Source: Bugula neritina (taxonomy: Eukaryota > Animalia > Bryozoa). Taken from it: a stretch of DNA of 64,000 nucleotides. Shown in pieces: positions 4,663-63,137 of the stretch (position 1 is the stretch's first letter; the number at the start of each line of letters is the position of its first letter). Location: positions 4,682,662 to 4,746,661 of the forward strand of contig OZ037770.1 in the NCBI GenBank assembly GCA_964035545.1. The letters run 5' to 3'. The notes beneath the pieces were generated by a model. The model had not been told where the DNA came from. It worked only from the letters and a program-made list of their open reading frames with translations, and searched no databases. The position numbers were made by a program, and so were the translations under genes.

Positions 4663-7600
4663 ATGGCAACAGCTGGTGAGTGAATTTTAATACTATTTTA
4701 TTCACTTATTTCTTGGAAAGCAGAAATATTCAAACTCTGAAGATATGTTGATATTATGCGACCAGAATTTAATATAATATATCTATAAGACTATTTTATT
4801 ATTACTACTGTCTATAGTACTGTTTTATGTCACCAATTAGTGTATTACTTTGAAAGTAGTAGAATAGATAAAATTATGCAAGCTGTTGGGTTAGAGTTGT
4901 CTTATCTCAACACAGTAAACACTGAACTACAAACCATACATTAAATGATTATTTAGAAAGAATAATTATAAATCTATCTAATAAAATATTTGTTACTTTA
5001 GTCATTATTCTGATTACTGAAATCCACCATATAAGAAATATATTCAATCAGTAGATGATAGGTGTCAGAATGATAGACACTACCTGCTAGCACTGTGTAA
5101 TAATCACTGCACTGTCACTGTATTATGTTACAGAGAATATGATAATCTGGTTCAGACATTCTGGACAGCCTCCTGTAAGCTGGTCAGATGTAAGGAGAGC
5201 TGATACCAAGTTATATACTACTGCTGAGGTGAAACATGAAGTTGGGAGTTATTACATCACAGATCTCAAGCTGGAGAGAACAATTCCAAGTAACATTGGA
5301 GAAATTGCGGGTAAAGCCCTGTGTCTACATGTTTCTAACCTGACTGACAGAGCAAGTCTAGACAAGTGAGTGTCTATTAAAATAGCTGTGTAAATGTTAA
5401 ACAAGTTCATTTATTAAATAATGATAATACTGCTATTTATGATGATGGATAAAATATAATGGATAATATAATATAAAATATACCTGATTGAATACACCAC
5501 TATAGTATACAGAGTACATACTACTTTTTGTGTTATTTATTAAATAATAATGGATAATAGACACTGAAGCTGAAGCATATTTTTGCTCATAATATATTCA
5601 TACAGTATAATATAAATCAACATAGTAATATGTGCAACATTGTATGTAATCCAAATGAGCTTATAAAACTGCCTCTACTGCTACTTCATAATATATGCTG
5701 AATCTAAGCATGCTTTTGCTCATAATATATGCATACAACATAATATACATCAACATAGTAATATGTGCAACAATGTATGTAATTCAACTAAGCTTATAGT
5801 TGTATAGAAACTAGGAAGTGCAAAACTGCCTCTACTCGATATCACTGACTAAATCATGTTTTATGTATATATAGCTAAAAATATGAGTAATGCACAGTCT
5901 ATAATATATTATACAAAAGACTATGTTATGCCCGCAACTGCAACTGCAAATGTTATTCAATATATTAATTTACAGAGCATTGTAGAGTGAGGCCTTGTGT
6001 ACTATAAACTGACAGCTAAGCTTGCTAAATGAAGCTTCCTCTTCCTACCTACAACATAATATTATAAGTGAAACTTTTTGTGTTTTTGTGTTACCAATAA
6101 GTGCGTTTCTTGCATATTTTACTTAGTTAAATACACAAGTAGCATGATATAATAGTATATATTATTTTGATATGGTAGACATAAATACATGACACACTTT
6201 ATATTACAGTCTATGTAAGCTGACTCAGTTAGAGAAACTAGACATAGGATGGAATCATCTCGACACAGTACCAGAAGTTGTGTCATCACTCACTTCACTT
6301 AAAGAGTTGAATATGGAAAACTGTAAATTATCTACTCTACCTGAGAGGTTTGTGGAACGCAGTCTTTCTTGTTTCAAACACTCAATAATTCACATGTTGA
6401 TATTATGCTTACCAAGTATTGGGAATTAGTATGTCACTATGTATTGTTGAAAAGCATAAAGCTGTAAATCACATATTCCTTGAGGCTATATGATATTAGA
6501 GTTTCTCAAAACTTAAAAATAAATATGTTTCAGTTATCTGGCATTACATTTCCTACTGCTATAAAACCTTCTTTAACAATTACTATAGCACCCACTTGTA
6601 GTTTACTAAAATCTAGTTCATGTTAAATGCTTTTTAGCTTTTGCTATTTTACTTTGAATTTGCCTTGTTGCAATAAATTTATTTCTTGGATATTTTACCT
6701 GATTGAATACACAAGTATAGAATACACAGTATATAATAATATCCTGATACAGTGGAATATATATATTATGCAGTTTATATTACAGTCTATGTCAGCTGAC
6801 TCGGTTAGAAAAACTACACATGAGAGATAATCCTCTCAACACAGTACCAGAAGTTGTGTCATCACTGACATCACTTAAAGAGTTGAATATGTGGAACTGT
6901 GGTTTATCTACTCTACCTCAGAGGTTTGTGTGTCAAAATAGTTATTTGTTTTGTATTAAACATTCTATATTTCACTTCTTTAATGCTTCTCAAGTAGTGT
7001 TATGCTATGATATCATAAATTGCCAACGTATGTTGAAAAACATAAACATGTATTCTTTTAACTTATCTAGTTGTTTGTCCTAACGTGGAAATAATACAAT
7101 TTTATAGTGAGCCATTGTATATCCTTATATCACAGAACTTTTTGTGATCAAAAATAAAGCAGCCCTCTCCAGTTTACTGACAATCATGGTAATAATCGAA
7201 TCTTTCTTAGCTTCTTGCGTCAAGCACTTTGACTATCCATTACCGGAATGAATTTTTTTTCTGCATTTTTTACTTGGCTGACTGTGCTTAGCAATATAAT
7301 ATGTACAGTGTATATTATTATGACACAGGAGACTACATACATCATACCCTTTATAATTATTGCAGTCTATGCCAGCTGACTCAGTTAGAGAAACTAAACT
7401 TAGGAGGAAATCCTCTCAACACAGTACCAGAAGTTGTGTCATCACTCACATCACTTAAGGAGTTGGATATAAAGAGCTGTGAATTATCTACTCTACCTGA
7501 GAGGTTTGTGGAACACAGTCTTTCTTGTTTCAAACATTCAATAATTCACATGTTGATATAATGCTTACCAAGTATTGCTAATTAGTATGTCACTATGTAT

Positions 7601-10600
7601 AGTTGAAAAGCATAAAGCTATAAATTACAATTTTCTTGAGGCTATATTGTATTTGAGTTTCTCAAAACTTGAAAATAAATATGTTTCAGTTTTCTGGCAT
7701 TACATTTCCTATTGCCATAAAAAGTTCTTCAACAAATACTATAGCACCGCTTGTACTTTACTAGAATCTATTTCAGATTAAATGTCTTTTACTTTAAATA
7801 TGCCTTGTCAAAATAAATTTTTTTTGCATGTTATACCATATTGAATACACCACTGTAGTATACACAGTACATAATATTATCCTGATACAGTGGATTGCAT
7901 ATATTATGCACTTTATATTACAGTCTGTGTCAGCTGACTAAGTTAGAGAAACTAAACATAAAATTGAATCCTCTCAACACAGTACCAGAAGTTGTGTCAT
8001 CACTCACCTCACTTAAAGAGTTGAAGATGTGGAACTGTGGTTTATCTACTCTACCTCAGAGGTTTGTGTGTCAAAATAGTTATTTGTTTTGTATTAAACA
8101 TTCTATATTTCACTTCTTTATTGCTTCTCAAGTAGTGTTATGCTATGATATCATAAATTGCCAACGTATGTTGAAAAACATAAACATGTATTCTTTTAAC
8201 TTATCTAATAGTTTGTCCTAACGTGGAAATAATACAATTTTATAGTGAGCCATTGTATATCCTTATATCACAATACTTTTTGTAATCAAAAATAAAGCAG
8301 CCCTCTCCAGTTTACTGACAATCATGGTAATAATCGAATCTTTCTTAGCTTCTTGCGTCAAGCACTTTGACTATCCATTACCGGAATGAATTTCTTTTCT
8401 GCATTTTTTACCTGGTTGACTGTGCTTAGCAATATAATATGTACAGTGTATATTATTATGACACAGTAGACTACATATATCATACACTTTATAATTATTT
8501 ATTGCAGTCTATGCCAGCTGACTCAGTTAGAGAAACTATACATAGGAGGAAATCCTCTCAACACAGTACCAGAACTTGTGTCATCACTCACCTCACTTAG
8601 GGTGTTGAATATGGAGAGATGTAACTTATCTACTCTACCTGAGAGGTTTGTGTGCCACAATAAGTTTTATATATCACTTTTAACATTCAATAATTGTTAT
8701 TTTGAAGCAGAATTTCAACACAGTAAATACTACATTAAGATGTTTATACTTTTTCTCTGCAAACCTACATATGAATCTCACCGTTGCTGGGGATATTGTC
8801 AATTAGCACACTATCTAGAAGTTTCCTCTGCTTCACAAGTTCTTTCATAGTATTTCTATATCTTTTTGAATATCTCCCATGATAGGTTGACTGGGCTGTT
8901 TTTCAGAAATCGTTTTAATAACTATTTTTATTATATTATAGTTATAGCTACTTCTGTACACATAATTTGCATATATATTATATTATTATAGTAACACAGT
9001 TTCTTTTTACTGTCTAATTGAATGCACAAGTGCTATATACAGTATCTACATAATATTATCCTGATACAGTGAATTACATATATTATGCACTTTATGTTAC
9101 AGTCTATGTAAGCTGACTCAGTTAGAGAAACTAGACATAAGTGGAAATCCTCTCTACACAGTACCAGAAGTTGTGTCATCACTCACATCACTTAAGGAGT
9201 TAAATATGGAAAACTGTAAAATATCTACTCTACCTGAGAGGTTTGTGAAACAGTCCTTCTTGTTTCAAACACTCAATAATTCACATGTTTTTATAATGCT
9301 TACCAAGTATTGTTAATTAGTTTGACAATATGTAGTGTTGAAAAGCATAAAGCTATAAATTACAATTTTCTTGAGGCTATATGATATTAGAGTTTCTGAA
9401 CACTTGAAAATAAATATGTTTCAGTTATTAGGCATTACATTTCCTATTGCTCTATAACCTTCTTTAGATAATACTATAGCACCCACTTGTGGTTTACTAG
9501 AATCTATTCCCCATTACATGCTTATTAGCTTTCGGTAGTTTACTTTGAATTTGCTTTGTTGCAATAAATTTGTTTCTTGATTATTTTTCCTGATTGAATA
9601 CACAAGTATGGTATAATATACAGTATATAATAACATCCTGATACAGTGGATTACATATATTATGCACTTTATATTACAGTCTATGTCAGCTGACTGAGTT
9701 AGAGAGACTATACATAGGATCGAATCCTCTCAAAACAGTACCAGAAGTTGTGTCATCACTCACTTCACTTGAAGAGTTGGATGTGGGGAGATGTGAATTA
9801 TCTAATCTACCTGAGAGGTTTGTGTGTCACTACAAATTGTACATCATTTTTAACGTTCAATAATTATTATTTTGTAGCAGAATTTCAGCACAGTAAATAC
9901 TACATTAAGATGTTTATACTTTTTCTCTGCAAACCTCCATATGAATCTCACCTTTACAGAGGATATTGTCAATTAGCACACTATCTAGAAGATTCCCGAT
10001 GTCACAAATAAGTTTATAGTATTCCAATATCTTTTTTGAAATGCTTCCCATGAGAGGTTGACTAGGCTTTTCTTAAGAAATTGTTTTATCAAACCTTTTC
10101 ATTATATTATAATGATTGTTACTTTTGTACCCATAATTGGTATATATTGTAGTAATTTTAGTAATTACTAGTTTTGTGGGCTTCTAGCGAGCAATATCTT
10201 TATATTATCTTCCAATAACATCACGGCTTGTAACAGGAATGAATGATTTATTAATACGCAGTAAAAGTATTAGCCAAACGATACATCCAGTATCAAGGGT
10301 AAAAATATACATCTATCTTACACTAACTAGCTATCACACTCTGAGTATGGCTGCTATCTACATCCGGCGCCCTCCGCGCATCGCTGGGGGTCTCATGTGA
10401 CGGATATCGGATTGGCTGGGGAGCACGTGGGATAACATACTACACTCCCCACTACACTGCCCCCCACCACAGCAGGAAGCCCACCTTCCTGATAATGCCA
10501 AAATAAAAAAATAAAATAACAACAAAAAAACAATAAGATATCTGCATCACCAGATCAAAATTTATACTTAGGCCAACGGTTTATTAAAAAAAAACATCTG

Positions 10601-19600: not shown

Positions 19601-22600
19601 AATTGCAAAATTCGGCCCGTTGTGCCCCCGTTACCCCTACTTACAATTATACTGTTATATTATATATCTTTATAAAATACTTAAAATGTTATGAATCATA
19701 TATAATATGATACTCGTACATAATTGTAACTTAGACATACTTGTTTTCTTTCCTTAATTAATGTACTAAATCAAGGTATTGTATATAAACTTGTTATTGT
19801 AACTGCAACTTAGTACTATATTATGTGTAATTATTGTTATATTAATATTGGGTATCTTTATGAAAACTAATATATCAATTACCTGTATAGTTAAGTCTAA
19901 TAATAGAATTATTATATATTATTAGAATACAGAGATTAAAGAAGTTACAGGAACTCACAATTTCAGAGAATAACTTCACCAGTCTACCTTCTTCAGTATG
20001 TGCATTGAGTAATCTGCACACACTGGATATATCCAACAACAGATCCATGACGTCCTTGAACCCTGAGATACTACAGCTAACACATCTTGAGTCTTTCCGT
20101 ACACGTGAATGTGATGCTCTTACATCTCCTCCGCTAGAAATCTGTGTAAGTGGAGTGGATGCTGTGCGACAATACTACACAGACTTGGCTAAAGGTGCTG
20201 GTAGAAATCTTCCATTTGCTACAACAGTGGTGTTGGGGAACACCATGGCAGGTAAAACCAGTCTAATCAGAACATTACAGAGCACTGACAAGAAGAGAGT
20301 TCTGACTGACAGAAGTCCTAATGCAGAGTATGATGAGACCACAAAAGTGTTTAATGTGGAGAAGGTGGAGGTGGATGGTACAACTCTTCGTCTATTTGAT
20401 ATGGGAGGCCAAGAAGTTTACCATATCACATACCATTTAACACTGAGACAGAATTGTGTACCAGTCATTGTAGTCAACATGGAGCAGTATGATCAGATTT
20501 CGAAAATGTCTACAAACAGAGAGGCTGTGAGAAAGCTGGCTTTTGACTTCATGTCTCACCTCTATCTCGCTCATCCAACTCTTGGTCCGCCTAAGCTTGT
20601 CTTCACACACAAGGATAAGTTTCGGAGTGAAGTTTTCCACCAGCTTCGAAGAAAGTTTCTTGTAGTGTCCGAGCAGTTATGCAGAAATATTCTTGAAGAA
20701 GAGAAAAGTTTAGAAGGTGACTTTGCTCGAATTCAACATTTCACTAAATCAAATGGAAAAATCTTTGAAAATGAAAGCATCTATGAAGTTGGGAAATTTG
20801 ATGAGTACAAGATATTTGAATCGATTAGAAGATCTCTTCTTCAAAGTTGCCAACACTTTGTAAAGCCACTTCCAAAAGTCTGGGAGGATGCCAACAACAA
20901 CATTTTGTCCTTACAGACTCCACATAACACCTTTGATGAAGTATTGGCTGTGATAAACAAAAAGCAGGATAACATTGAAGCAAAGCAATTGGATACGATT
21001 ATCATGTACATGCATGATTGTGGCAAAGTTCTCTGGTATAAACATATTGATGCACTCAGGCCATACATATTTCACAAGATCACAGAAATAACCAAGCTAC
21101 TCTGTGTCTTGTATCATCATGATCCAGACATCTGGCAAAGGAGAGTTGATCAGTTCAAACCATATTGCTGCAGAGAAGGAGTGAGAATTGAAAAACAAGA
21201 TTTTGGAGAGTTTGTGAATTCCTTTAAAATAAATGGCTTGATGACGAAATCTCTTCTTGAATATTTGATCAGAAAAGAAACTTCGTTCACTGATGATAAT
21301 AATGTCGAAATTGCTGTTTGTTTGCTCAGAACATTCCGTTTATTGTATGGCCCTTTGAATAAGGATTCTGAAGATCCTTACTTTATAATCCCCCAGTTTG
21401 CCAAAGAATCCTACAGCCTCTCCTACACTCCACCAAAGGAGCTACTGCTTCATACCGACACACAGTTTAATGGTCTGGCATTACCGCTACATGTCTACCA
21501 TCAGATGACGGTTGGATTGCTAGAACTATTTGCTGACGATTCTGCCACAATACAAGTGAAAAGGAATGGAGCAAATGTATATCAAGATAAAATATACACA
21601 CAGCTGATACATGACTATGAATCCAGGAGAGTGTTGCTCTATACGTCATCTGGTGCTAATAATATTACCAAAGCGTGGGAAAAACTCATTTCAGTCAACA
21701 ACAACATCCTCAGACATGTTATGGAAATTTGGACTGCCAGTCGTCCAGTCACTGCCTGTATCTCTGCTCACTGCTTCCTGCTAGGTGTTCCATGTCCTAA
21801 AAAGTCTATTCATTCTAAATGGTGTTTTCGCTCCTTGAAGAAGCCTTCACCAGTTGTCAAGAAGTGCAGCGGATCTTCAACAATCTTGTGCAATAATGAG
21901 GAGATCCCAAGAGCTTTGATTTTCCCATGTATGTATCACTAATAGTGGTTATTACTATGTTTCTATAAATTGAAACTATTGCCTACTACATAAATAATTT
22001 TCATTACTACAAACTCTAAAAAAAACTTGCTAATTTTTTTTTAAATTTGAAAATATTTAAACCAAATACATTCTGTTCTGCGTAGATTTGTAACATTCTC
22101 GTAGTGGTTCTGCCGCAACTTATATTTTAGCTACCAAATACGTTGATTACGGTATACATAATAGGTGAGCTGGTCATAGTATATGTAGACTGGGTACATT
22201 TTACGTAATATGGAAGCTGGTTGTAGTACATGTAGACTGCACTGTTTTGTTCAGGTGAGGCATTGACTGAGACAGAAACCGATGAGCTGGTGAAGCTATT
22301 GACTCAACTTAAACTTCGTAAACAACAGAATGATGCAATCAGAATTGGTACATCTTTATAATACTCATTTTCTCAAAATCAGAGATCTACAATGTAGCAC
22401 TTTATTTACCTTGAATGGAAATTTTATAAGAAAATGCCTTTTTTCAGACAATCAATTAAAGTGCAACCTTGCAAACTTTTTCTTTTTCAATTTATCCTGG
22501 TATTAGCCAATCAAATCATGTGACTGCAGATGATGATGGTGATCTGAGTGATCTCTCTGATGATGATGACAATCTGTATCCTGATGAAGAGAATGAGGAA

Positions 22601-25543: not shown

Positions 25544-25549
25544 AATAAA
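25544..25549 (+). terminator. Candidate polyadenylation signal, paralogue 1
   Basis: AATAAA in the 3' region, conserved with paralogue 2 (63700-63705). The AT-rich background lowers its specificity. Confidence 0.4.
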
Positions 25550-47007: not shown

Positions 47008-50000
47008 ATGGCAACAGCTGGTGAGTGAATTTAAATACTATTTTATACACTTATTTCTTGGAAAGTAGAAATGTTTAAACTCTGAAGATATGTTGATAAT
47101 ATGCCACCGCAATATAATACATCTATAAAACTATTTGATTATCACTACTCTCTATAGCACTGTTTTATGTCACCAATTAGCGTATTGCTTTGAGAATAGT
47201 AGAATAGATAATATTATGCAAGCAGTTGGGTTAGAGTTGTCTTATCTCAACACAATAAACACTGAACTATAAACCATACATTAATTGATTATTTAGAAAG
47301 AATATAAAGCTATCCGATAAAATATATGTTATGTTAGTCATTTTTATGATTACTGAAATCCACCATAATATATGACAGGTGTCAGAACGACATACATCAT
47401 CGGCTAGCACTGTGTAATAATCACACTGTCACTGTATGATGTTACAGAGAAGATGAGAATTTGGTTCAGACATTCTGGACAGCCTCCTGTAGACTGGTTA
47501 GATGTACTGTGTGCTGATACCAAGTCATATACTACTGCTGAGGTAAAACGTGAAGTTGGGAGTTACGATATCACAGATCTCCAACTGGAGAGAACAATTC
47601 CAAGTAACATTGGAGAGATTGCTGGTAAAGCCCTGTGTCTACATGTTTCTAACCTGACTGACGGAGCAAGTCTAGACAAGTGAGTGTCTATTAAAATAAT
47701 AGTGCAAATGTTAAACAAGTTCATTTGTGTTATTTATTAAATGATAATTGATAATATGTGGTGCTGAAGCATGTTTTTGCTCATAATATATTCATACAAT
47801 ATAATATACATAAAAATTAGAACATGTGCAACATTGCATGTAATCCAAATGAGCTTATAGCTGCAATAGCTAGGGAGTGTAAAACTGCCTGTACTGTTAT
47901 TCGATGTCATAGACTAAATCATATTTTATGTAAATATAGCTAAAATATGAGTAATGTACAGAATATGATATATTATACAAAAGACTATCTTATGTCATCA
48001 ACTGCAAATATACAATATGAAACATTACTTAATATATTAACTTACATAGCAATTTAGACTGAGGCCTTATGTACTATAAACTCACAGCTAACTTTGCAAA
48101 ATGAAGCTTCCTCTCCTCACCTACAACATAATATAACTGAAACTCTTTGCTGTTTTTGCAACAATGTATCTGTTTTCTGCATGTTTTTTTCGGTTAAATA
48201 CACAAGTAGCATGATATAATAGCATATATTATTTTAATATGGTAGACATAAATACATGACACACTTTATATTACAGTGTGTGTCAGCTGACTCAGTTAGA
48301 GAAACTAGACATAGGATGGAATCCTCTCAACACAGTACCAGAAGTTGTGTCATCACTTACATCACTCAAAGAGCTGGTTATGTGGAGCTGTGGTTTATCT
48401 ACTCTACCTGAGAGGTTTGTGTTTCACAATATTTCTTCTGTTTCAAACATCCAATATTGCACATCTTTAATGCTTCTCAAGTAGTGGTATGCTATGTTAT
48501 CATAATATATTGCCAACATATGTTAAAAACATAAGTATAAGCATTTTTTGAACTTATCTAATAGTTTGTCCTAACTTGGAAATAATACAGTTTTATGGTA
48601 TGCCATTGTATATTCTTATATCACAATTATTTTTTTAATTATAATAATAAAAGAGCCATCTGTAGTTTACTTGCGATCATGGAAATAACTGAATGCTTCT
48701 TAGCTTCTTGTCTTATTGACTTTGACTATCCATTACCAAAATGAATCTGTATTTTGCATGTTTTACCTGGTTGAGTGCACCAAATGAATATAATCTATAC
48801 AATATATATTATTATGATACAGTAGACTATATATATCCTATTTTTTATGATTATTACAGTCTATGATAATGAATAATATATGCTGAAGCTGAAGCATATT
48901 TTTGCTCATAATATATTCATACAATATAATATACATCAACATAGTAATATGTGCAACATTGTATGTAATCTAAATGAGATTATAGTTGTAGAAACTAGAG
49001 AAGCTGCCTCTACTGTTACTTGACAGTGTTGATTAAATCATGTTTTATGTATATATAGCTAAAAACTGAAGTAGTGTACAGTTTACAATATATTATACAA
49101 AAGACTATGTTATGTCATCAACTGCAAATGTACAATCTTAAACATTAGTTAATATATTAATTTACATAGCAATTTAGAGTGAGGCCTCATGTACTATAAA
49201 CTAACAGCTAACCTTGCATAATGAAGTTTCCTCTCCTCACCTACAACATAATATAACTGAAACTCTTTGCTGTTTTTTGCAACAATATATCTGTTTCCTG
49301 CATCTTTTATGTTGAATACACAAGTAGTCCGATATAATGGTATATATTATTTTGATATATGGTAGGCATAAATACATGACACACTTTATATCATGTTACA
49401 AAACCTAAATATGCATATTTTTTGAAGTTATCTAATAGCTTGTCCTAACGTGTAAATAATACAGTTTAATGGCATGCCATTGTATATCCTTATATCACAG
49501 AACTTTTGATAATCAATAATAAAACAGCCATCTGCGGTTTACTGGCAATCATGGTAATAATCGAATCTTTCTTAGCTTCTTGCATCAATCACTTTGATTA
49601 TCCATTACCGCAATGAATTTGTTTTCTGCATTTTTTACCTGGTGGACCGTGCTTAGCAATATTATATGACGTAACATGAACCTCCCCAACTCTGACAAAA
49701 TAAGACCAGCTAAAGCCACCTTTAATTCTGAGATGAATAAAAATGATTATATGTATAGATACAACACCCGGGAAAATAAAGCATCTACATTTTGTACACC
49801 AGACCTATCTCCTGAAGAGCGTGACCGTGACTATAAACTTAGAAAACTGAGGGACGAATTAAAAGCAACTCACTCAGACAAAATGTTTCAAGTAAGAAGT
49901 TTGCCCATGACTCTGATACTATTGCTTCAGAATCTCTCTGGGACCCCAGCAAGACTAACACCACAACTGATAAAAACACAGCTGGACATTAAATATATAC

Positions 50001-53000
50001 AAGTCATACTTACCACTCTACTGCTAACTAACCTGTCCAACTCAACTATCATGGCAGAACAAAAAGAGTTTAAAGTAATATCTTGGATTTGCAATGGTAT
50101 CAGGGGTAAAATACATGAACTTTCCATGCTATTAGATCAGCAATCGCCAGATATCTTTTGCTAATGTGAAACAAAACTAGATTCATCAGTTTCTGCTAAT
50201 GAGTTAAACAGAGACTACACCCTGTACCGGCGTGATCGAACTGACGGACTAGGACGTGGAGGTGGAGTCCTTATAGGCCTATCCAATGAATGTCCCTTTG
50301 TTGTTAGTAGAATCAATGTCTCACACCCTGGGGAAATCATTGCCCTTGATTTATCAATCTGTGGATACTCTTTCACTATTGCATGCTATTACCGTAGGCC
50401 CTGTATAAAACAAGTAGAAGATATAGTAAATTGGTATTATGATCAAACCAATCCGAACATTGTTATGGTTTGGGATTTTAACCTACCTGACATTGGCTGG
50501 AATGATAGTAACAGGCCTGTACTTAAAACAACAAGAGAAACTAACTTGCATCAATTGTTCGTAGATTTTATAATTTCGAATAATCTTTCTCAGGCTATCA
50601 ATAAACCTACTCACGACAAAGGTAATACGCTTGATCTAATTGTTACAAATGTAACTACCACTAACCCCTGAGTTGAGTCATCCTGCTCTGACCATTTTAT
50701 TATCAATTTCAATGTGTTGGCGGATAATGTTATTCAAAGGACAGCATCTTTAACCAAACCAAAACCATATTGGCAGTTTGAAAAGGCAGACATAACGAAC
50801 ATCACCGTGGACTGTTACTCCCTACATTGTAAAATTACCTAAGAAATGTAGCGCTGAACAATTATGGCATAATCTCAAATCTGGAATACTTCAGGTAGCA
50901 CATTCTAATATCCCATACAAATTTAGAAAGAAAAAAAATCAGAACTCTGGATATCCCAAGAAACTGAAAGTGAGATCAGAAAAAGAAAACACCTCCACCT
51001 AGCTTGCCTTAATGATCGCACGCCGCACAACATTTTAAAACACGCTACCCAGTCCCGGTACTGCAAGAAATTGTGTAACAGGGACTATAATAATTATATA
51101 AACAAACACATATGCAATACATTAGAGCAGGGTGATTCAACACCTCTTTATCAGTTCATAGCAAATAAAAAGGGCAGCTCAAATACTGTACGCCAACTAG
51201 ACAACATCCCCCCTAACAACAATACTGCTATAGCTGAATCTTTTGCGGACTCCTTTGCTTCTGTGTTTTCTATTGATGATGGTAATATCCCTCCCTGCAT
51301 TCCACCTCAAACTATATCATCTCCTATACAATTTGATCCTCGGGGAGTCCTAACACAGCTCACCAAACTCGATCCACGAAAAGGTGCTGGCCCAGATGAG
51401 CTTTCTCCTGCACTTCTAAAATATCTTGCACATTATATATATGAGCCCCTGACAAAGGTTTTTCAGTACTTTTACGATACATCTCAGACACCACAAGACT
51501 GGAAAACAGCAAACATTGTACCGATCTTCAAGAAATGAAGTCGTACAGACCCGCTGAATTATAGGCCAATATCACTCACTTCTATCATATCCAAAATCTT
51601 CGAGCATATCGTATCACATAATATCAACTGTTTCCTCAAATCAAATGACCTGTTTTACCCACACCAACATGGTTTCAGGACAAATCATGGCTGCGATACT
51701 CAGTTGTTGAATACCGTGAGTGAATTTATAGATTTTTTCAACGAAATGATAGCGGTTGCCCTCGCTGTCTTAGATTTTTCAAAGGCCTTTGACGCTGTGC
51801 CGCACCAAAAACTACAGATAAACTGCTAAATATCGGAATAGCTGATAAAACTGTCAAATGGATTTTTTCATGGCTTCAGAGGCGTCTTCTTTCAGTCTGT
51901 GTCAACAACGTCAAATTGGCCACTAGACATGTGACCTCAGGAGTGCGCCAAGGCAGTGTTTTAGGACCATTGTTATTTAATGTGTACATAAATGACATGC
52001 ACTCTGCGGTAGCCAACAGCAAGCTTAAACTATATGCGGATGATTCCTTGTTGTACAAACCAATCACAACACCTGCTGATTCTAGTTTATTTCAGAATGA
52101 CTTAGACCATCTTATAACTTGGGCAGACAGTTCTCAGATGAAGTTCAATATAAATAATTGCGAGCATATGACAATTCAACGCTCCACTGCAAATCCTCTA
52201 GTGTCTCAATACAGCATGAATAATGACCCCTTACAATGTGTTGACAAAGTATTATACCTTGGTGTCACGATTGATAATAAACTGTCATTCGATCAACATA
52301 TAATAAACATTTGCTCAAAAGCTAATAAATTATTACACATGCTGATGCGCTGTCTAAAAAAGGCTAAAAGTAAAACCAGAGCCATAGCTTATGAAACAGT
52401 CTGTTGCCCTATACTAGAATCTGCGACCCACACCTGGTCTCTATTTAAATTGAAAAACATCAACATCATAGAAGGTATAAATAGAAAAGCCTTCAGGTGG
52501 AAATTCTGTAAGAGAAAACGAGATCATATAACTGAGCTCATCACAAACTCTAATTGGGATAGCCTTGCACTAAGACGTGACAATGCAGACCAAAAAATGT
52601 ACTTTTGTATGCTTTCTGGTAGTGCCGCTATAGACCAGGGCCGGTTCTCCCTTCATTTTGCAGAGTCTCACAATACTAGACATGGTGCTATTAAGGGCAA
52701 TATCCTTACCAAAACTGCCAAACATTCATATAAACATCGCATCCATAAACTTTTCTAATGATTCTAGCTGCTTTGCCTAACTGATTATAAGCACTTAACA
52801 CCGACTCTGCTTCGTAACATCTGAAGCAGTGCTGTGTATATTTATTTATTTATTTACTTTTTTTTTCTCTCCTGGCAGTAGCTAGCTATTGAGCTTTGAA
52901 TCAAAGCATAATTAACTATATTCTTATCTCGTAGACAAAATGGTTTTCTTCCCTGCTACTGATAATCTAAACAATTGTTCATACACCACTGCATCTCGAT

Positions 53001-56000
53001 AAAGGAGCCAAAGCGCTCCGAGTGAGATTAATTAGATGAGATGAGATGAGATGAGATGAGATGACGTTCCATTGCTGGAATTATTGTGTTTTCTGCACTT
53101 TTACCTGGCTGACTGTGCTTAAGCAATATAGTCTATACAGTGTATAGTATTATCACACAGTAGACTACATATATCTCACCCTTTATGATTATACAGTCTA
53201 TGTCAGCTGACTCAGTTAGAGAACCTATACATAGCAGGGAATCCTTTCAACACAGTACCAAAAGTTGTGTCATCACTCACATCACTTGAGGAGTTGGATA
53301 TGAGGATCTGTAAATTATCTGCTCTACCTGAGAGGTTTGTGGAGTCTTTTATTATTTCGATCATTCAATAATTCACATTTTGATATAATGCTTACCAAGT
53401 ATTGCTAAATAGTGTATCCTTATGTACCGTTAAAAAGCATAAAGCTATAAATTGTAATTTGCTTGAGATTTTATTATATTATAGTTTCTAGAAACTTGAA
53501 AATAAACATGTTTTAATCATTTGGCATTACATACTCTAATGGTATAAACCTTGGTTAACAAATAATGTAAACTATCAGCCCTGGTTTGTAAACAGGCTCA
53601 TTGTGGTCTTCAGTCTCTACTGATGTTTTATTGGTAAAACTGTCGTGAAAACTACAATTAATGAAATAGTGAATATGCCATAATGAATGATAATATGTGA
53701 TAAAACTTTCATCAGTGATAATTTGACACTAACTAATAAGCTTCAAGTAAAGAACAAGTCTTGCTATAAAAATCAATATACACCATCTAAATTATTAAAA
53801 TTGATATTAAAAAAGATAATACAAATGCCATAAATGATTGTCAAAAATACTACAATAACAATAATTACCTTGTTAGACCATCCGGGAATGAAGCTTATAA
53901 CTTTGATGTTAATGCAGTAGGTATTTATTCTCTACTTTGATAATATTGATTTAAATGGAACAAAATATTTAACATAACAAGTGAAAAGTTACTCAGCAGG
54001 TTATGCTACATGTTAGCTGACTGAAAGTGTAGCATAGAATGAGAGCTGAGAGTAAAATATTCTTTAATGAATTAATCATTTCAGGAAGCTGATGGTGTAA
54101 AAAACTATTTATATAACTTAGTCATAGTAAAATTATACACATGAGGAAATCATGTTGACTGTCGTGTGCAAAATTGTCACAGCCATAAAAGCAAAACAGC
54201 TACATATACATGACTAAGCAATGGTTTTTCTAATTATAGGCACGTTGGTTAACTTTGTTTGTTTTGATGAGAGCAAGAAATTTTACTGGCATTCCAATTA
54301 ATTACAAATAATATATAGCACCAACTTCTAGTTTACTAGAATCTATTTCAATCATTCAATAATTCACATTTTGATATAATGCTTACCAAGTATTGCTAAA
54401 TAGTGTATCATTGTGTACCATTTAAAAGCATAAAGCTATAAATTGTAACTTTGCTTGAGATTATATTAAAGTTTTACGAAACTTGAAAATAAACATGTGT
54501 TAATCATTTGGCATTATATACTCTAACGGTATAAACCTTCCTTAACAAATAATATAGCACCCACTTGTAGTTTACTATAGTATCTATTTCCCATTAAATG
54601 CTTATTAGCTTTCTGTATTTCACTTTGAATACGCATTGTCAGAATAAATTTGTTTCTTGGATATTTTACCTGATTGGATATACAAGTAGTATAATATACA
54701 GTATATATTATTATCCTGATACAGTGGATTACATATATTATGTACCTTTTATTACAGTTTATGTGAGCTGACTCAGTTAGAGAAACTACACATAGCAGGG
54801 AATCCTCTCAACACAGTACCAGAAGTTGTGTCATCACTCACATCACTTGAAGAGTTAGATATGAGAATGTGTGAATTATCTAATCTACCTGAGAGGTTTG
54901 TGGAGTATTTAATTGTTTCAAGCATTCAATAATTCACTATTTGATATAATGCTTACCAAGTATTGCTAAATCGTCTATCATTATGTACAGTTAAAATGTA
55001 TAAAGCTATAAATTGTAATTTGCTTGAGAATATATTGTATTAAAAATTCACGAAACTTGAAAATAACCATGTTTTAATCATTTGGCATTACATACTCTAA
55101 TGCGGTATAAACCTTGGTTAACAAATAATATAGCACCCACTTGTACTTTACTAGTATCTATTTCCCATTAATAGTTTATTAGCTTTCTGTATTTTACTTT
55201 GAATACGCATTGTCAGAATAAATTTGTTTCTTGGATATTTCACCTGATTGGATATACAAGTAGTATAATATACAGTATATAATATTATCCTGATAGAGTT
55301 TATTACATATATTATGTACCTTTTATTACAGTCTATGTCAGCTGACTCAGTTAGAGAAACTAGACATAGAAGGGAATCCTCTCAACACAGTACCAGAAGT
55401 TGTGTCATCACTCACATCACTTAAAGAGTTGAATATGCAGAGCTGTGAAATATCTACTCTACCTGAGAGGTTTGTGTGTCACAATAAGTTTTATATATCA
55501 CTTTTAACATTCAATAACTATTATTTCATAGCCATATTTCAACACAGTAAATACTACATTAAGATGCAAACCTACATATGAATCTCACCGTTTCTGGGGA
55601 TATTGTCAATTAACACACTATAATCTATAGAAGTTTCCTCGACTTCACAAATTATTTTATAGTATTTCAATATCTTTTTTGAAATGCTTACCATGATAGG
55701 TTGACTAGGCTTTTTTTCAGAAATCGTTTTAATAACTCTTTTCAATATATTTTAACTATAGCCACTTTTGTACACAAAATTAGTTTTTATTATTTTATTA
55801 TAATAACATATTATCTCATTATTTTCAAATTAGTCAGAAAACCACTTCCTTATATTTTTAATGACATCATGTATGACATACTTGACTCAATCAACTGTAT
55901 TGTGTAAGGCTCATTAGTAACAATGCACAGTGGATTATAATATGGTATGTTTTACTTGAATAATTCAAGTTTGAGGTACAATTATTTCGACATGAAAGAT

Positions 56001-59000
56001 CTGACATTATATTTTTAACCTAAGAAGAGAAAACAAATCATATATTGCCACCTTGTTTTTTGCATGCTCTACTTTAGTTGTCTATTTCAACTCTCACTTT
56101 ACTAGAAGCCAATTTTTATTCTATTCCTGTTCTCAAATAACCCATGAATATATTTCTTTATATTTACTTTACATTTATAAGTTACTAATTAACTGCCCTT
56201 TAGAAGTGTAACATGTTCCTTGCGAGACTATGACTTTCCAGAGTTGTATTCTCTCTTAGTGAAATAATTCACAACTTCTACTTCCTGTCTAAAAATATGC
56301 TGCATTTATTAGAATACTTAGTGGGAAGTTGTGTCAGAAGTATTTTTTTTTTTATTGAAACTACTTTAATGCCTTGTGTAGGTGTTTCAGAGCTGTACTG
56401 TGTTCCTATTTGATGATAAATTACATGTATTATGGCACATAAAACAATATTCCTTATAATTATAACATCCATATAGTAGAATATCAGTGTGAACAGTTAC
56501 TCAGTGATCAGAAGTGTCAGAAGTATTTTATTTTTACTTCACATTACTTTAATGCCTTATGCAGCTGCCACAAAGCTGTAGCCTACCATGTTCCTATTTG
56601 CTGATAACTGTATTATGCATATGGCACATACTAGGAATTTTGTACTCTGTACTATAAAATATTATTCCTTCTAATAGAATACTTGTGTGAACAGTTACTC
56701 AGTGATCTGCCATATAAATGAAGATTTCTGTATGATAGTATTCTGTCTAGGGTGTGTTTTTATGACAGTTCTTAGTACGAATGTAGCACTTTTCTTACCA
56801 AATATACTTATAATTATGCTGTTATATATATATATCTCTATGAAATACTTGAAACTTTATGCATCGTATATATATATAACATGGTACCCGTACATAATTG
56901 TAACTTAGACATACTTGTTTCTTTCCTTAATTAATGTACTAATTCAAGGTATTGTATATAAACTTGTTATAGTAACTGCAACTTAGTACTATATTATGTG
57001 TAATTATTGTTATACTAATATTGGGTATCTTTATGAAAACTATTATATCAATTACCTGTATAGTTAGGTCTAATAATAGAAATATTATATATTATTAGAA
57101 TACAGAGATTAAAGAAGTTACAGAAACTCAACATTTCAACGAATAACCTCACCACTCTCCCATCTTTAGTGTGTGCATTGAGTAATCTGTACACACTGAA
57201 TTTATCTGGCAACAAATCCATGACATCCTTGAACCCTGAGATACTACAGCTAACACATCTTGGGTTCTTCTATACATCTGGATGTGATGCTCTTACATCT
57301 CCTCCACTAGAAGTCTGTGAAAGAGGACTGGATGCTGTGCGACAATACTACACAGATTTGGCTAAAGGTGCTGGTAGAAATCTTCCAGTTGCGACAATAG
57401 TCATGCTGGGGAACACAATGGCAGGAAAAACCAGTTTGATCAGAACATTACAGAGCACTGACAAGAAGAGAGTTTTAACTGACCGAAGTCCTAATGCAGA
57501 GTATGATGAGACCACAAAAGTTTTCAATGTGGAAGAGGTGGAGGTGAATGGTACAACTCTTCGTCTCATAGATATGGGAGGCCAGGAGGTCTACCATATC
57601 ACATACAATTTAACACTGAGACAAAATTGTGTACCAGTAATTGTAGTCAACATGGAGCAGTATGATCAGATTTCGAAAATGTCTACAGACAGAGAGGCTG
57701 TGAGAAAGTTGGCCTTTGACTTCATGTCTCACCTCTATCTCGCTCATCCATTTCTTGGCCCACCTAAGCTTGTCTTCACACACAAAGATAAGTTTCGGAG
57801 TGAAGTTTTTCAACAGCTTCGAAGAAATTTCCTTAAAGTGTCTGAGCAGTTTTGCAAAAATATTCTTGAAGAAGAGAAAGGTTTAGAAGGTGACTTTGCT
57901 CGAATTCAACATTTCACTCAATCAAACGGAAAAGTGTTCTCCGACGACAACATATATGAAGTTGGAAAATTTGACGAGTACAAGATATTTGAATCGATTA
58001 AAAAATCTCTTCTTCAAAGTTGCCGACACTTTATCAAACCCCTTCCAAAAGTCTGGGAGGATGTCAACACAAAAGTGTTGTCCTTGCAGTCCGCACACAA
58101 TACCTTTGATGAAATCCTGGCAGAGATGAAGAAAGAACGGAATGATATTGATAGAAACCAATTGGATACCATCATCATGTACATGCATGATTGTGGAAAA
58201 GTTCTCTGGTATAAGAATGTTGATGCACTCAGGCCATACATATTTCACAAGATTACAGAAGTTACCAAACTGCTGTGTGTCTTGTATCACCATGATCCAA
58301 ACATCTGGCAGAGCAGAGTAGATCAGTTCAAACCATATTTTTCAAGAGGAGTGAGAATTGAGAAGCAGGACTTTGAAGAGTCTGTGAACTACTTCCAAGC
58401 AACTGGCCTAATGATGCAATCCCTTCTTGAATATCTGATAGCTCAGGAAACTTTATTTAGAAATCCGGGTGATGTTGAAATTGGGCTTTGTTTGCTCAGC
58501 ACGTTCCGTTTGTTGTATGGCCCTAGGAATGATGAATCCTATGATTCCTACTTCATAATCCCTCAGTTTGCCAAAGAATCTTACAGCCTCTCCTACACTC
58601 AACAAAAGGAGTTACTGCTTCATACTGAGACTCAGTTTAATGGTCTGGCATTACCGCAGCATGTCTACCATCAAATGACTGTTGGTTTGTTAGAGATGTT
58701 TTCTAAAGAGTTTGCTACAATGCAAGTGGAGAGGAATGGTGCTAACGTCTACCAAGATGAAATATACACACAACTGGTACACGATTACGCATTGAGAAGA
58801 GTTTTACTCTACGTTTCATCTGATGCGTCCAACATTTCCAGAATGTGGGAGAATCTCATTTCGGTCAACAACAACATCCTCAGACATGTTATGGAGACTT
58901 GGACTGCTAGTCGACCAGTCACTGCCTGCATTTGTGCTCACTGCTTGCTACTTGGGGTTTCCTGTCCTAAAAAACTCTTTCACTCCAAATGGTGTCTTCG

Positions 59001-62000
59001 ATCCTTAAAAAACCTGCTGCCACCTAATGTCAAGAAGTGTGGTGGAGCTTCAAAGATGTTATGTAATGGAGAGGAGGTCCCTAGCGCTTTAATCCACCCA
59101 TGTATGTTCACTCATAAAATTGAATTTCAACAGAAATATTTTCAATAATTGTTTCAACAAATAAATATTTACTACTTTGTGTTGCAAAAAAACTTTTAGT
59201 AAAAATTTTGAGCAATTAGTTGAATATTTTGTCTTAATTATAAAATCGCAACTTAAAAGCATGAGCTCCTATTCACATGTCATTATCTCGTAATTTAAAT
59301 TATTTAAGGTTTAGTAATACAAATCTTGTTTGTTCTATTCAGGTGAGAAATTGTCAGAAACAGAATCAAATAAGTTGAAAAAGCTAGTTGCTGAGCTCAA
59401 ACTGCGAGGAGATCAGAACAATTCAACTGGTAAATTTTTTTAGACAGAACTTGATGTGGGTCATTTTACTTAATTTAGTACAGGAGTATGACCTGTGTCA
59501 TGAACACACCTAAATAATCAAACCTCCTCCTAATTTTGCTTGATTTCCCATGTTTTTTCCTAATTATTCAGCTACTTTTGACTGCAGACTGTCATGAAAA
59601 AACCATATTTCTCTGAAATCAAAAGTAGCTGAATAATTAGGAAAAAATATGGGAAATCAAGCAAAATTTAGAAGAACCTTGATTTTTTAGGTGTGTTCAT
59701 TTAAGCTTTACTACTTTTGGGCAAAACTGATGTTCATTAGCAGCTAAAATGTAAAAAAATAGCTAAAAACAGGTGTGTTCATCACTTTTGGGCAAAAACT
59801 TATGTTAATTAGCAGTTAAATTGTAAAAAATAGCTAAAAACTGGAGATTTCCAGTGTGTACTAAATTAAGTAAAATGACCTATGTGTACAGCCACCACTT
59901 GATAAAACTCCTTGTTTTGCAAAGCTGGCCATACATGTAGATATCTAAGAGCTTTTTTATGCATGCGTTCATTGTAATCCATTGCTTTTTGCTGCTAGTG
60001 GTTGAGAAAAATTTTAATTGTATGGCTTTTAAATGATGACAAAAATCAACTGTTCACATGACTGTCTAGAAATATTAGCTGATGATCTGAGTGATCTCTC
60101 TGAAGATGATGACAATCTGTACCTTGATGGAGAGAATGGGGAAGGCCTGAAGCTGATACAACTTGAATTGAAGCCAACCACCAACCCAAAGATAAAGCAG
60201 CTATTCTCAGATACTGACAAGGTGAATGTATATTCAGTTGATGAATATACGTCTATAGACTCTTTTTACTAGATAATCATGACTATAGTCGTTCAATTAC
60301 TTTTAGAAAAAGTTCAATCTGAACGCAATTTTTCCATTTACTTCAGTTAACTTTTAATTTTTAGCCATGTCTGTTTTTGGGCTGTGTCTGTTTGGTTAAG
60401 GTTTAATCTGTTGTCACACGGTTAGGAAATATTTGTAGTGTCGAGATTTCTGGCCCCTTTGATGTATTGATTTGTGCACCTGCATGCATGGTTGAATATT
60501 TTCTGCAACATATTCTGATTTTTTTGTGAAGAGTAGCAGTAGTATAAACGTTATTCCAAAAGATATTAAAGGTCAGATGTAAATAAAGACTAAAAGAGAG
60601 GTAGAGAGGTCCGTGGTGTCCTTAAGAAATAAACTGGATGTAGTGTTAAGATCGCCTATAAGTCTCTGTGGAATAATCTCAGTGGGACAAAATTGTTTTT
60701 CGCCTGGAACCTTAAACTTTTCTGTACCTTCGCCATAATTTGCTATTGCATTCTATGGTATCTTTAAAGTTAGTAAATACTTTGTTGAAGAGGTTTGGCT
60801 TTTGAAGTTTAGTTCACATATAATGGTTTAAATGTCAAAATTGATGATATCTTGTCAGTATGGCCATGCATTGTCATTATTTACTTCCATAGCTTTACCA
60901 ATTTATATACTTGATTTAGAAAAATGTAGGATTAATTACAAGCTATTATCAACAAATCAGAATTAATATACTTGTAGCCTGCTATTGTTTTTTAAACCAT
61001 ACCTCAATGATATTTTTTTATGCTTAACCGACTACCAAATGCAATGAACTATTTCGTTAGTAAAATTATCATTCGGTCTGATACATTAAAATTAATTTTA
61101 TTCTAGTTTATGCTACCCAATTGGCTAATAAAATAAAATCTAAAATACAAAAAGCAATTGAGATATAAAATGTTTTTTTTTCAAAAGTATGTAATTTGAC
61201 TGGTTTTTTACAAGACTTAAAAATTTAAGACTTGTTTGGAGTTTGTGAATTACTACTGTATGCAATGCTTTAAGCATATTTGTATCCAGGTGCTCAGTAT
61301 GACCAGAGAGAGAGGAAGAGCTCTGATAATAAACAACAAAAATTTTGTTGAAAGACCAGACTTATGCAGGGAAGGTTCAGATGCTGATGTTGAGAACGTG
61401 TCTGTCATGTTGAAATCTCTCAAGTTTGATGTTGAGACAAACACAGACCTAAAGGCAGAGGTATGTTGTTATGGTGAAAACAATGCGAGCACTATTTAAC
61501 CATCACACTTGAAAGTTGACCCAATGATGGACTGTAATTGTTCAGTTTATCAATGCCTAAAAATTAGGACTATATAAAAACCATAAGCATGTTTGCGGGT
61601 TACAATTTTGTTTTTTGCAGGTTGGATAATTGTTATTTTATTCAGTTTTCATAACTTTGTATCAGTTATTAAACATAGTTATTTTCATATTGGTAGGAAA
61701 TGATGTCTGCTGTGAAGTCTGAGATAAGAATAGAGAAAAACAATGGCTTGGGCTGTCAAATACTGGTTATTATGACGCATGGTGGAGAAGATAACTGCAT
61801 CTATGGAACTGACCTTGAGCAGGTCAACCTTACAGACTTCTATGATTTTCTCGCTCCTCTGAGTCTGAAGCCTAAACCTACAGTTGTCATCCTACAAGCT
61901 TGCAGTGGAGGTAATTACATTTTTGTATAGAAAACTTTCATTTTTAGTCAAGTAGTGAAAATAATACAGAGACCCTTGAAAAGTTTTTTCTGTACTGATC

Positions 62001-63137
62001 AAATTTCTTTTTTACTCATCACGGTGCAAGTTTGAATGCGTTTGTTTTTCTTGCAGCAAACATTGATGTGAATCCAGACAGATCAGGTCTTGCAGCAGCT
62101 CAAGAAGAAGAAACTGAAGCTGTCTCTTCTACACATTCTGAAGCTGATGGTGATATTGTATATCCTGAAACACCCATTGTAATGAGACCCATCAGACCTG
62201 TCTCACCACCAGAATATAGAGTAGAAGAACACATGACAAGACTGGATATTGATAATCTTCTTGTTCTGAAGAGTAACGTCTGCTGTAAGTATAATAAGAG
62301 ACAATGATAGGCTGATATTTCTAAACTGTTGTACTTTGTCACCTATCTAAAAATTGTTCTTTGCCGTTTTCTTGCGTTACTTCCACATTTTTAATCTTGT
62401 TGATTTGATAAGCTTCTAAACTGAGGTGACTAAAATGTTTTCTAGAACTTTGAAATTTAAATTGTGTTACACTTTAGCTTAAAACATCTTATACTTTGTC
62501 TGACTAGACCATGATTTTGGCTGCATTTAAAATTATTATAGCATCAAAAAGACATCCTGAGTATGGATCTCCCATGATTAGAGTCCTAGTATCTTCAATC
62601 TACAAACATGCCTGTCACCGTGATCTCTACACCATCTTTCAGCAGGCAAGTTAAAAGCTCAAAAGTTTTTTTGCTGTTTTAACTTTTACGCCAGAAACTA
62701 TTTCTCATCGTGGCACCTCTTTCATCTCCATGTTCAAACCATTATGTCATTTGAAAGAAACAATTTAAGTTGTTCTGAGTACGAGAGAAAGTCATTCAGT
62801 GCTTTACTCGTTTGAATCGTAACTAGTCCCCTTTATCAAATGACATTACTGTAGTGGACAACTCCAAAAGTTTTACTACTCAGAATTGTTAAAGTAGGAT
62901 GCAATATTCTAACAGCTCAGAGTTGTACCTTATTACTTATGATAGTGAATTTATGAACAGTCTTACTAGTCATTACTTACTCTACAGGTACAGACTAAAT
63001 TAGTGAAGAAACTGTATGCAGATAAAGATTCAGAGAAAAGCAGAAATTTGATTGTAATCTGGAATACTTTTCCTCCCCGTAAAAGACTTCACCTGTTTCC
63101 AGGCTTTGATGGATTTGGTGAAGAGGCCAAATCTTAA
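47008..63137 (+). CDS. ROCO-caspase paralogue 2: LRR-Roc-COR-caspase, ~1301 aa, catalytic dyad intact
   Basis: Exons 47008-47020, 47448-47679, LRR cassettes 48277-48414, 53197-53334, 54758-54895, 55332-55469, then 57099-59101, 59343-59429, 60070-60221, 61290-61460, 61697-61910, 62057-62284, 62542-62645 (GC donor), 62988-63137 (TAA). Total 3906 nt, open. MTHG (CAT 61778-61780) and QACSG (61895-61909). Confidence 0.85.
48277..48414 (+). CDS. LRR cassette exon A of paralogue 2
   Basis: 138 bp. VCQLTQLEKLDIGWNPLNTVPEVVSSLTSLKELVMWSCGLSTLPE. Confidence 0.9.
49673..53060 (+). mobile_element. 5'-truncated CR1/L2-group LINE (ORF1 end plus APE-RT ORF2, decayed)
   Basis: ORF1-like tail TPDLSPEERDRDYKL; endonuclease motifs (CETKLD, GGGVL, DFN, TLDLI, SDHF); RT QGSVLGPLLF and YADD; in-frame stops; 3' (GATGA)n tail at ~53035-53064. 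Possible TSD ATGACGT (49666-49672 and 53061-53067). Confidence 0.9.
53197..53334 (+). CDS. LRR cassette exon B of paralogue 2
   Basis: 138 bp. LCQLTQLENLYIAGNPFNTVPKVVSSLTSLEELDMRICKLSALPE. Confidence 0.9.
54758..54895 (+). CDS. LRR cassette exon C of paralogue 2
   Basis: 138 bp. LCELTQLEKLHIAGNPLNTVPEVVSSLTSLEELDMRMCELSNLPE. Confidence 0.9.
55332..55469 (+). CDS. LRR cassette exon D of paralogue 2
   Basis: 138 bp. LCQLTQLEKLDIEGNPLNTVPEVVSSLTSLKELNMQSCEISTLPE. Confidence 0.9.
57099..59101 (+). CDS. Large exon of paralogue 2: last LRRs, Roc GTPase and COR
   Basis: 2003 bp. GNTMAGKTSL, IDMGGQ, THKD, YMHDCGKVLWY; collinear with 19926-21928. Confidence 0.92.
59459..59880. mobile_element. MITE/foldback element with internal hairpin (intronic)
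   Basis: 24-bp perfect TIR GGTCATTTTACTTAATTTAGTACA / TGTACTAAATTAAGTAAAATGACC, with ATGT on both flanks. Internal ~80-bp inverted repeat at 59500-59700. Absent from the matching intron of paralogue 1. Confidence 0.8.
61290..63137 (+). CDS. Caspase (peptidase C14A) domain exons of paralogue 2
   Basis: RGRALIINN, CREGSDAD, MTHG, QACSG, SKRHPEYGS, KRLHLFPG. The His/Cys dyad and the Arg/Gln/Arg S1-pocket residues are present. Confidence 0.88.

Follow-up and report, generated by a model that had tools for sequence, protein, structure and literature searches.

Does an animal genome encode receptors in which recognition, a nucleotide switch and a protease are carried by one polypeptide? The question is raised by a 64,000-nucleotide stretch of the genome of the bryozoan Bugula neritina (referred to below, in its whole length, as the window), in which two tandem paralogues on the + strand join leucine-rich repeats (LRRs), a Roc GTPase domain, a COR domain and a caspase. 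Copy 1 occupies ~5.1-25.0 kb of the window and copy 2 ~47.5-63.1 kb. The analysis described here leads us to consider, with a probability of roughly 55%, that the two genes are members of a large, lineage-specific family of cytosolic single-chain LRR-Roc-COR-caspase receptors with a role in immunity or allorecognition, whose mechanism we infer.

Both genes are built on the same exon plan: a first coding exon of 227 nucleotides (nt), LRR cassette exons of 138 nt, a Roc-COR exon of ~2.0 kb, two linker exons and five caspase exons. The copies are 78-91% identical when compared exon by exon, and their intron sequence is mostly unalignable. In the splice model made for both copies, all introns are bounded by GT..AG except for one GC..AG intron in copy 2, and intron phases are identical between the two genes. 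The large exon of copy 1 (19926..21928, +), encoding the last LRRs, Roc, COR-A, COR-B and a Cys/His-rich tail, ends in CAT|GTATGT at phase 1. It is followed by linker exon L1 (22255..22347, +; helical, phase 1-1), linker exon L2 (22530..22678, +), in which the acidic motif DLSDLSDDDDNLY is found, and the first p20 exon of the caspase (22946..23116, +). The corresponding exons of copy 2, also on the + strand, lie at 57099..59101 (large exon with the same domains), 59343..59429 (L1), 60070..60221 (acidic L2) and 61290..61460 (p20). A sequence-only reading of this locus had proposed that the Roc-COR exon continues in frame through two short linker exons into the caspase, with conserved splice phases. 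An independently made splice model returned exactly the junctions of that reading for both copies; the two genes agree in phase, and the phases of L1 and L2 are kept in 29/29 paralogues.

The proposal that no adaptor domain or kinase intervenes between COR and caspase was likewise upheld. No CARD, DED, death domain or kinase exon is present in this interval, in which L2 gave no Pfam domain and L1, a helical stretch of 28-31 residues, was left unscanned. The COR-to-p20 stretch measures only ~80 residues, and the N-terminal CARD or DED prodomain of death-fold-recruited initiator caspases (caspase-8/-9/-2, CED-3) was not found. The Pfam scan gave no match to NACHT or NB-ARC in any exon. The switch domain is a Ras-like GTPase, and the family may work like NOD-like receptors (NLRs) but is not an NLR family.

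The two copies belong to a much larger set of genes. Among 140 first-look candidates in the 216-Mb genome, full-length Roc-COR exons number at least 69 (66 without and 3 with a stop codon), and they cluster on contigs C6, C1 and C5. In 53 cases a caspase p20 exon follows on the same strand at a distance of 0.7-10 kb. The other 16 appeared 'unpaired', and a different effector was considered for them; this was rejected in view of the divergent caspase exons found, together with L1 and L2, in all three that were sampled. Paralogue tallies in this work refer to 29 loci (of 49 paired) and 3 extra ones. All 29 fetched paralogues are colinear, in the order Roc-COR, L1, L2, p20a, p20b, intersubunit linker, p10a and last exon. 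Ratios of nonsynonymous to synonymous substitution (dN/dS) by the pooled Nei-Gojobori method, rough values from non-independent pairs, were 0.27 for Roc-COR, 0.35 for L1, 0.26 for L2, 0.23 for p20a, 0.29 for p20b, 0.17 for p10a, 0.60 for the intersubunit linker and 0.46 for the last exon. Judged from these codon comparisons, every exon is under purifying selection, linkers included. Since neither L1 nor L2 contains a start codon and both are nevertheless under coding constraint, they are hard to explain unless they join COR to the caspase. A second cluster, at C1:34.0-34.9 Mb (loci L042-L044), holds genes whose caspase is both more divergent and more canonical (IMSHG, QACSG/HACSG, GTWFI); in L042, one of the three sampled, a stop is found in the p10 exon.

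The large exons were compared with known Roc and COR domains. Pfam Roc exceeded its gathering score in both (E 5e-08 and 6e-08), and COR-A was matched with 24 and 19 bits, below its gathering score of 35.3. The GTPase motifs are kept throughout the paralogues: the P-loop GxxxxGK[ST] in 28/28, DxxG in 29/29 and T-H-K/R-D in 29/29. The Roc-COR exon of copy 2 was modelled with AlphaFold from an alignment of 42 sequences, and the model reached a predicted local distance difference test score (pLDDT) of 89.3 and a predicted template modelling score (pTM) of 0.88. Its fold matches were LRRK1 (8E05, E 7e-22), the LRR-Roc-COR and Roc-COR tandem structures of CtRoco (6HLU/3DPU) and LRRK2, and the model also aligned with the COR-only structure 3DPT (TMt 0.62-0.66). 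The best solved relatives by sequence are the prokaryotic Rocos MbRoco2 and CtRoco, the MbRoco2 structure 4WNR aligning in Roc and COR-A. In the model, COR-A and COR-B follow directly after Roc, which is the arrangement that defines ROCO proteins. A complex prediction with two chains of the COR-B/tail region (residues 446-644 of the copy 2 exon), run without controls, scored 0.00 and speaks neither for nor against dimerisation. After COR-B, the last ~60 residues encoded by the exon (58930-59101 in copy 2, 21760-21928 in copy 1) show the Cys/His pattern C-x-H-C ... W-C ... C ... P-C, with His591 and Cys592 invariant among the 42 Roc-COR homologues; this tail may be a metal-binding module that lacks a Pfam annotation.

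An exhaustive HMMER search with the Roc-COR exon retrieved 92 proteins at E < 1e-30. The long matches are RefSeq models from another bryozoan, the cheilostome Watersipora subatra, that combine LRRs, Roc/COR and Peptidase_C14. There are at least ten such models, for example XP_067947674.1 (1419 aa) and XP_067948342.1 (1413 aa), and their full-domain Peptidase_C14 matches range from E 1e-36 to 5e-40. They are labelled 'MFHAS1 homolog' or 'uncharacterized', and under these names the family has been hidden in the databases. In another run, a Logan contig was observed to have the same exon order. Next in relatedness come MFHAS1-like proteins of Lingula, Owenia and Branchiostoma, in which the C-terminus is empty or carries a GT4-conflict or Death domain, the latter two occurring in Branchiostoma; Peptidase_C14 was not found in any MFHAS1-like protein examined outside the bryozoans. 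A word-indexed protein search returned only Watersipora proteins, which is not proof of absence elsewhere. A protein-cluster search with a Watersipora protein was uninformative, returning only generic MFHAS1/ROCO clusters (scores <0.9), none with both Roc and Peptidase_C14.

A quick maximum-likelihood tree unites the bryozoan proteins that carry a caspase in a single clade (support of 100 in the Shimodaira-Hasegawa-like approximate likelihood ratio test, SH-aLRT), apart from the MFHAS1-like outgroups. The 29 Bugula genes represent one lineage-specific expansion, except that a metagenome open reading frame (ORF), JGI_P0001, is nested within it, and copies 1 and 2 fall in different subclades. 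As the bryozoan clade adjoins the animal MFHAS1-like proteins in the Roc-COR tree, independent assembly of the bryozoan fusions and of their bacterial counterparts is suggested. The architecture had been put forward as not known to be characterised in animals. This stands in so far as no published account of an animal LRR-Roc-COR-caspase was found in a literature search that left subscription journals aside; it is weakened by the bacterial precedent (PMC8195603) and by the existence of the Watersipora RefSeq models.

The caspase portion decides what such receptors could do. Besides the p20a exons given above (Peptidase_C14 E 3.5e-11 in copy 1 and 6.9e-09 in copy 2), it is encoded in copy 1 by p20 exon b (23467..23689), a long intersubunit linker exon with NIEVSPD|RSG ... 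RDIDD|LLVLKS (23876..24112), p10 exon a with SKRHPEYGSPMIRAL (24338..24441) and a last exon with LYLFPGFDG and the stop codon (24810..24971), all on the + strand. In copy 2 the equivalent + strand exons are p20b (61697..61910), the intersubunit linker with NIDVNPD|RSG ... RLDID|NLLVLKS (62057..62284), p10a (62542..62645) and the last exon with the stop (62988..63137). It is the intron after p10a of copy 2 that carries the GC donor (CAG|GCAAGT at 62646), the counterpart in copy 1 being GT. Window exons were searched singly, and in both copies single p20 exons exceeded the Peptidase_C14 gathering score; as a proxy for the family's caspase domain, a public Watersipora protein was compared. Among solved structures, the closest match of the proxy was caspase-3 (E 5e-22), followed by CED-3, caspase-9 and caspase-8. 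On this comparison the family caspase is classed with the animal type and not with metacaspases or bacterial orthocaspases.

The p20/p10 caspase had been described as complete in both genes. Structurally this is correct, but the catalytic His is missing from copy 1, which reads MTLG where copy 2 has MTHG. The two genes are not equivalent, and about a third of the sampled paralogues lack a catalytic residue. The catalytic His is kept in 28/29, copy 1 being the sole exception (CAT>CTT, Leu). Because the 28 other sampled paralogues retain it and the copy 1 gene is otherwise intact, its loss there appears recent and private. The catalytic Cys is kept in 21 of the 29, including copy 1 (EACSG). It is replaced by Ser (TGC>AGC) in seven loci (L025, L027, L029-L032 and L035) and by Ala in one (L034), and the caspase exons of these loci are still open and conserved. 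The Cys>Ser genes occur in at least two clades of the tree, for which recurrent mutation or gene conversion could account. Glu precedes Ala-Cys in most genes, the canonical Gln (QACSG) being limited to copy 2 and the two paralogues nearest to it. By its motifs copy 2 is a fully canonical caspase member, and copy 1 is a probable pseudo-caspase. When the proxy was aligned to caspase-3, CREGSD corresponded to Arg64 and SKRH to Arg207 of the S1 pocket; both are present in copies 1 and 2, and at the second Arg L033 and L037-L040 carry Ile or Ser. The intersubunit linker is long (~75 residues) and has a conserved Asp site close to each end: V-S/N-P-D|R follows directly on the active-site pentapeptide, and D-I/V-D-D/N|L immediately precedes the p10 core. 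In these features it resembles initiator rather than effector caspases.

These features bear on a first alternative, in which the fusion is real and no killing takes place: the caspase would be a signalling or self-processing protease that cuts itself or a small set of specific substrates, as with the paracaspase MALT1, or a pseudo-enzyme that serves as a dimerisation scaffold. EACSG in place of QACxG in most members would fit such a role, as would the loss of Cys or His from members whose caspase exons are still conserved, the replaced p10 S1 Arg of one subclade and the Asp sites on both sides of the intersubunit linker. Against it, both His and Cys are kept in 20/29 genes, the nearest relatives are the apoptotic caspases-3, -9, -8 and CED-3, and the C-terminal position in the bacterial counterparts has been read as that of a toxic effector (PMC8195603). 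We regard a caspase without a killing function as unlikely, though well worth keeping in mind.

The sensor end is encoded by the first coding exon and the cassettes. The first coding exon of copy 1 (5139..5365, +), with an ATG, 75 codons and 2 nt, was placed by homology with the copy 2 exon at 47453-47679, + (donor AA|GTGAGT); neither a Pfam domain nor an obvious signal peptide was found in it. In copy 1 it is followed by seven 138-nt cassettes (6210-6347, 6786-6923, 7366-7503, 7924-8061, 8508-8645, 9103-9240 and 9680-9817; span 6210..9817, +), which are phase-symmetric and encode two LRRs each. Copy 2 has four 138-nt cassettes (48277-48414, 53197-53334, 54758-54895 and 55332-55469; span 48277..55469, +). 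LRRs were matched by Pfam in the cassette exons. Each cassette begins with 1 nt and ends with 2 nt of a codon divided by an intron, and by virtue of this common phase cassettes can be joined in frame in any number. The 11 cassettes of the window are near-identical save for seven codons, namely 11, 13, 14 and 34, 36, 37, 39, which correspond to the x positions of LxxLxLxxN/C; at these codons, 39-48 replacement differences between cassette pairs stand against 0-9 silent ones. Such a pattern is that expected of diversifying selection on the predicted concave face, in repeats that are otherwise homogenised. The earlier suggestion that the variable LRRs act as a sensor is in keeping with this concentration of replacements at the x positions of LxxLxLxxN.

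What the LRRs would recognise is a separate matter. They could read polymorphic self, the caspase executing rejection at colony borders, so that the family would be a histocompatibility system and not a pathogen sensor. The host is colonial, bryozoans have been listed among the colonial animals with allo-incompatibility (PMC8195603), and a large, clustered, lineage-specific family with hypervariable LRR faces would suit such a system. The proteins look cytosolic, to judge from an exon 1 with no signal peptide or membrane segment, whereas the known animal allorecognition receptors are surface proteins. An exclusively histocompatibility function is held to be improbable.

To follow the joint between Roc-COR and caspase in transcripts, contigs of four RNA-like runs (four studies) were aligned to copy 2. 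That these runs are RNA is a guess, with which the GT..AG joints and the empty introns agree. The Roc-COR to L1 joint (59101>59343, GT..AG) was present in contigs of three studies, the L1 to L2 joint (59428/9>60069/70, GT..AG) in contigs of four and the L2 to p20 joint (60219/21>61288/90, GT..AG) in one. Further GT..AG joints were seen at 61908/10>62055/57 and 62284>62542, and loose contig ends at 62646 continue into the last exon of copy 2, that is, the GC-donor intron is spliced. Two contigs consist wholly of Roc-COR, L1 and L2 (364+86+41 = 491 nt and 265+86+41 = 392 nt). Contig depth falls to about zero across the long intron at 60.35-61.15 kb. The joint-bearing contigs differ from copy 2 by 4-5%, their variant letters matching L016 at 25/31 and L017 at 23/31 positions; the gene shown to be spliced is thus an allele or a very close paralogue, and splicing of copy 2 is concluded by homology. 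One more joint, 60129>61288, has the non-canonical ends GA..CC and is present in all four runs. It probably represents contigs of a paralogue with an unalignable distal L2 exon or, less probably, an alternative isoform.

Were Roc-COR and caspase mostly separate proteins, the fusion would exist only as a minor product of splicing or as an artefact of annotation. An in-frame stop (21942 in copy 1, 59148 in copy 2) is met after the Roc-COR exon when the intron is retained, almost every paralogue has a conserved Met (22955 and 61299 in the two copies) ahead of the caspase core, and contigs cannot reveal transcript ends. Yet the GT..AG joints from Roc-COR through L1 to L2 and from L2 to p20 are found in contigs, the linker exons without a start codon have kept phase and coding constraint throughout the sampled family, and the independent NCBI models of Watersipora join the domains. 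Separate proteins as the main products are accordingly very improbable. That the loci are decaying repeat DNA, a set of pseudogenes which duplication and transposable elements have spread and which have no present function, is hardly credible: retroelements do lie in introns of both copies, a stop interrupts 3/69 Roc-COR exons and some members have lost catalytic residues, but 66/69 frames lack a stop, dN/dS stays well under 1 for each exon, the GTPase motifs are invariant and spliced RNA-like contigs exist.

The repeats of the window are as follows. An LTR-type (long terminal repeat) retroelement, G+C-rich (54%) and with aspartyl-protease and reverse-transcriptase ORFs, is located at 11097-16850 on the - strand, in the long intron of copy 1. 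A reverse-transcriptase element of the non-LTR type (49676-52758, +) lies in copy 2, in an intron between LRR cassettes. Between the genes, a 14-bp minisatellite, GAGGATACTGAGAG, is repeated ~122 times at 35798-37495, and accounts for a strong GC skew and for long minus-strand ORFs that are spurious. An 18-bp repeat with 28 copies (45125-45632) is located shortly before copy 2.

For the single-chain receptor reading, the following mechanism is proposed. The protein would consist of an LRR array assembled from shuffled 138-nt cassettes, Roc, COR-A/COR-B, a tether of ~80 residues, helical and then acidic, and an animal-type caspase. A non-self or danger ligand would bind the hypervariable concave face of the LRRs. 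The threshold would be set by the Roc-COR nucleotide switch, which would free an autoinhibited conformation, alter the oligomeric state, or both. Two tethered caspase domains would then meet and be activated as initiator caspases are, and the cutting of downstream substrates would lead to signalling or to the death of the cell. Paralogues with a dead active site, copy 1 among them, may serve as cFLIP-like partners, decoys or regulators. Innate immunity or colony allorecognition would be the likely role. In published structures of LRRK2, the LRR shields the effector domain.

Some points weigh against this reading or parts of it. No single contig covers Roc-COR through p20, the joints being covered piecewise and from a close paralogue or allele. 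Glu stands in place of the S1-pocket Gln in 26/29 genes and 9/29 lack His or Cys, so that Asp specificity, or protease activity altogether, may be missing from many members. For CtRoco, the best-studied LRR-Roc-COR protein, GTP is reported to drive monomerisation and activation (PMC11052575), and a simple model in which GTP means dimer and dimer means active caspase may consequently be wrong. Taken together with the shielding seen in LRRK2, the monomerisation of CtRoco makes relief of autoinhibition, followed by ligand-driven clustering, at least as likely as the trigger put forward in the sequence-only reading, nucleotide-driven Roc-COR dimerisation that fires the caspase.

A wider view can be offered only tentatively, and the odds are somewhat against it: bryozoans would have replaced or supplemented the NLR and apoptosome machinery with a GTPase-gated repertoire of single-chain receptor-caspases, an independent animal invention of a sensor-switch-executioner design like that of bacterial conflict systems. 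Dozens of paralogues with hypervariable LRR faces would detect non-self within the cell, and active and dead caspase paralogues would pair and so adjust a death or signalling output. If the single-chain receptor reading is true, these proteins are a class of animal receptors for innate immunity or cell death, with recognition, nucleotide switch and protease in one polypeptide, and with a GTPase where NLRs and Apaf-1 have a STAND (signal transduction ATPases with numerous domains) ATPase. They would provide a simple system for studying how Roc-COR controls an attached enzyme, an open question for LRRK2, as well as caspase activation without death-fold adaptors and recognition repertoires made from cassette exons in colonial invertebrates.

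Among known systems, the family is one of ROCO proteins with an attached effector, for which the caspase has a bacterial precedent and of which the animal version is undescribed in searchable papers. Bacterial LRR-AP-GTPase(Roc)-COR proteins carry at their C-terminus one of at least 24 effectors, caspase included, and have been read as immune sensors (Kaur et al. 2021, PMC8195603). The bryozoan proteins share with these conflict proteins the module order of rapidly evolving LRRs, Roc, COR and a C-terminal effector (in some cases a caspase-fold peptidase), the presence of many paralogues per genome and a predicted sensor-switch-effector logic. They differ in that the effector is an animal p20/p10 caspase and that the genes, at least 69 in number, are intron-rich with cassette LRR exons. 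The MFHAS1/MASL1-like ROCOs are the nearest annotated animal relatives, with the same LRR-Roc-COR core and, in invertebrates, variable C-termini; Peptidase_C14 is absent from those examined outside the bryozoans, whose proteins form a clade of their own. In Aplysia, ROCO modules are fused to TIR or Death. With LRRK1, LRRK2 and CtRoco the family shares the predicted Roc-COR-A-COR-B fold and, with the two kinases, an effector placed C-terminal to COR; the caspase takes the place of kinase-WD40, ankyrin or armadillo repeats are absent, and identity is 12-16%.

A similar logic is found in the NLR inflammasomes and the Apaf-1/CED-4 apoptosome, in which an LRR (or WD40) sensor and an NTPase switch activate a caspase by induced proximity. 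In the bryozoan proteins, a Ras-like GTPase substitutes for the STAND ATPase and the caspase is attached covalently instead of being recruited through CARD, PYD or DED. Copy 1 and 8/29 paralogues resemble cFLIP in keeping the caspase fold without His or Cys beside active-looking neighbours, but these pseudo-caspases are fused to a whole LRR-Roc-COR receptor and have no DEDs. In brown algae, LRR-ROCO genes with shuffled in-phase LRR exons are candidate immune receptors (Teng et al. 2024, PMC11378527). They and the bryozoan genes have in common large families and in-phase, shuffled LRR cassette exons under diversifying selection; the algal proteins have no effector and their cassettes are of 72 nt, encoding one LRR, whereas those of the bryozoan are of 138 nt and encode two.

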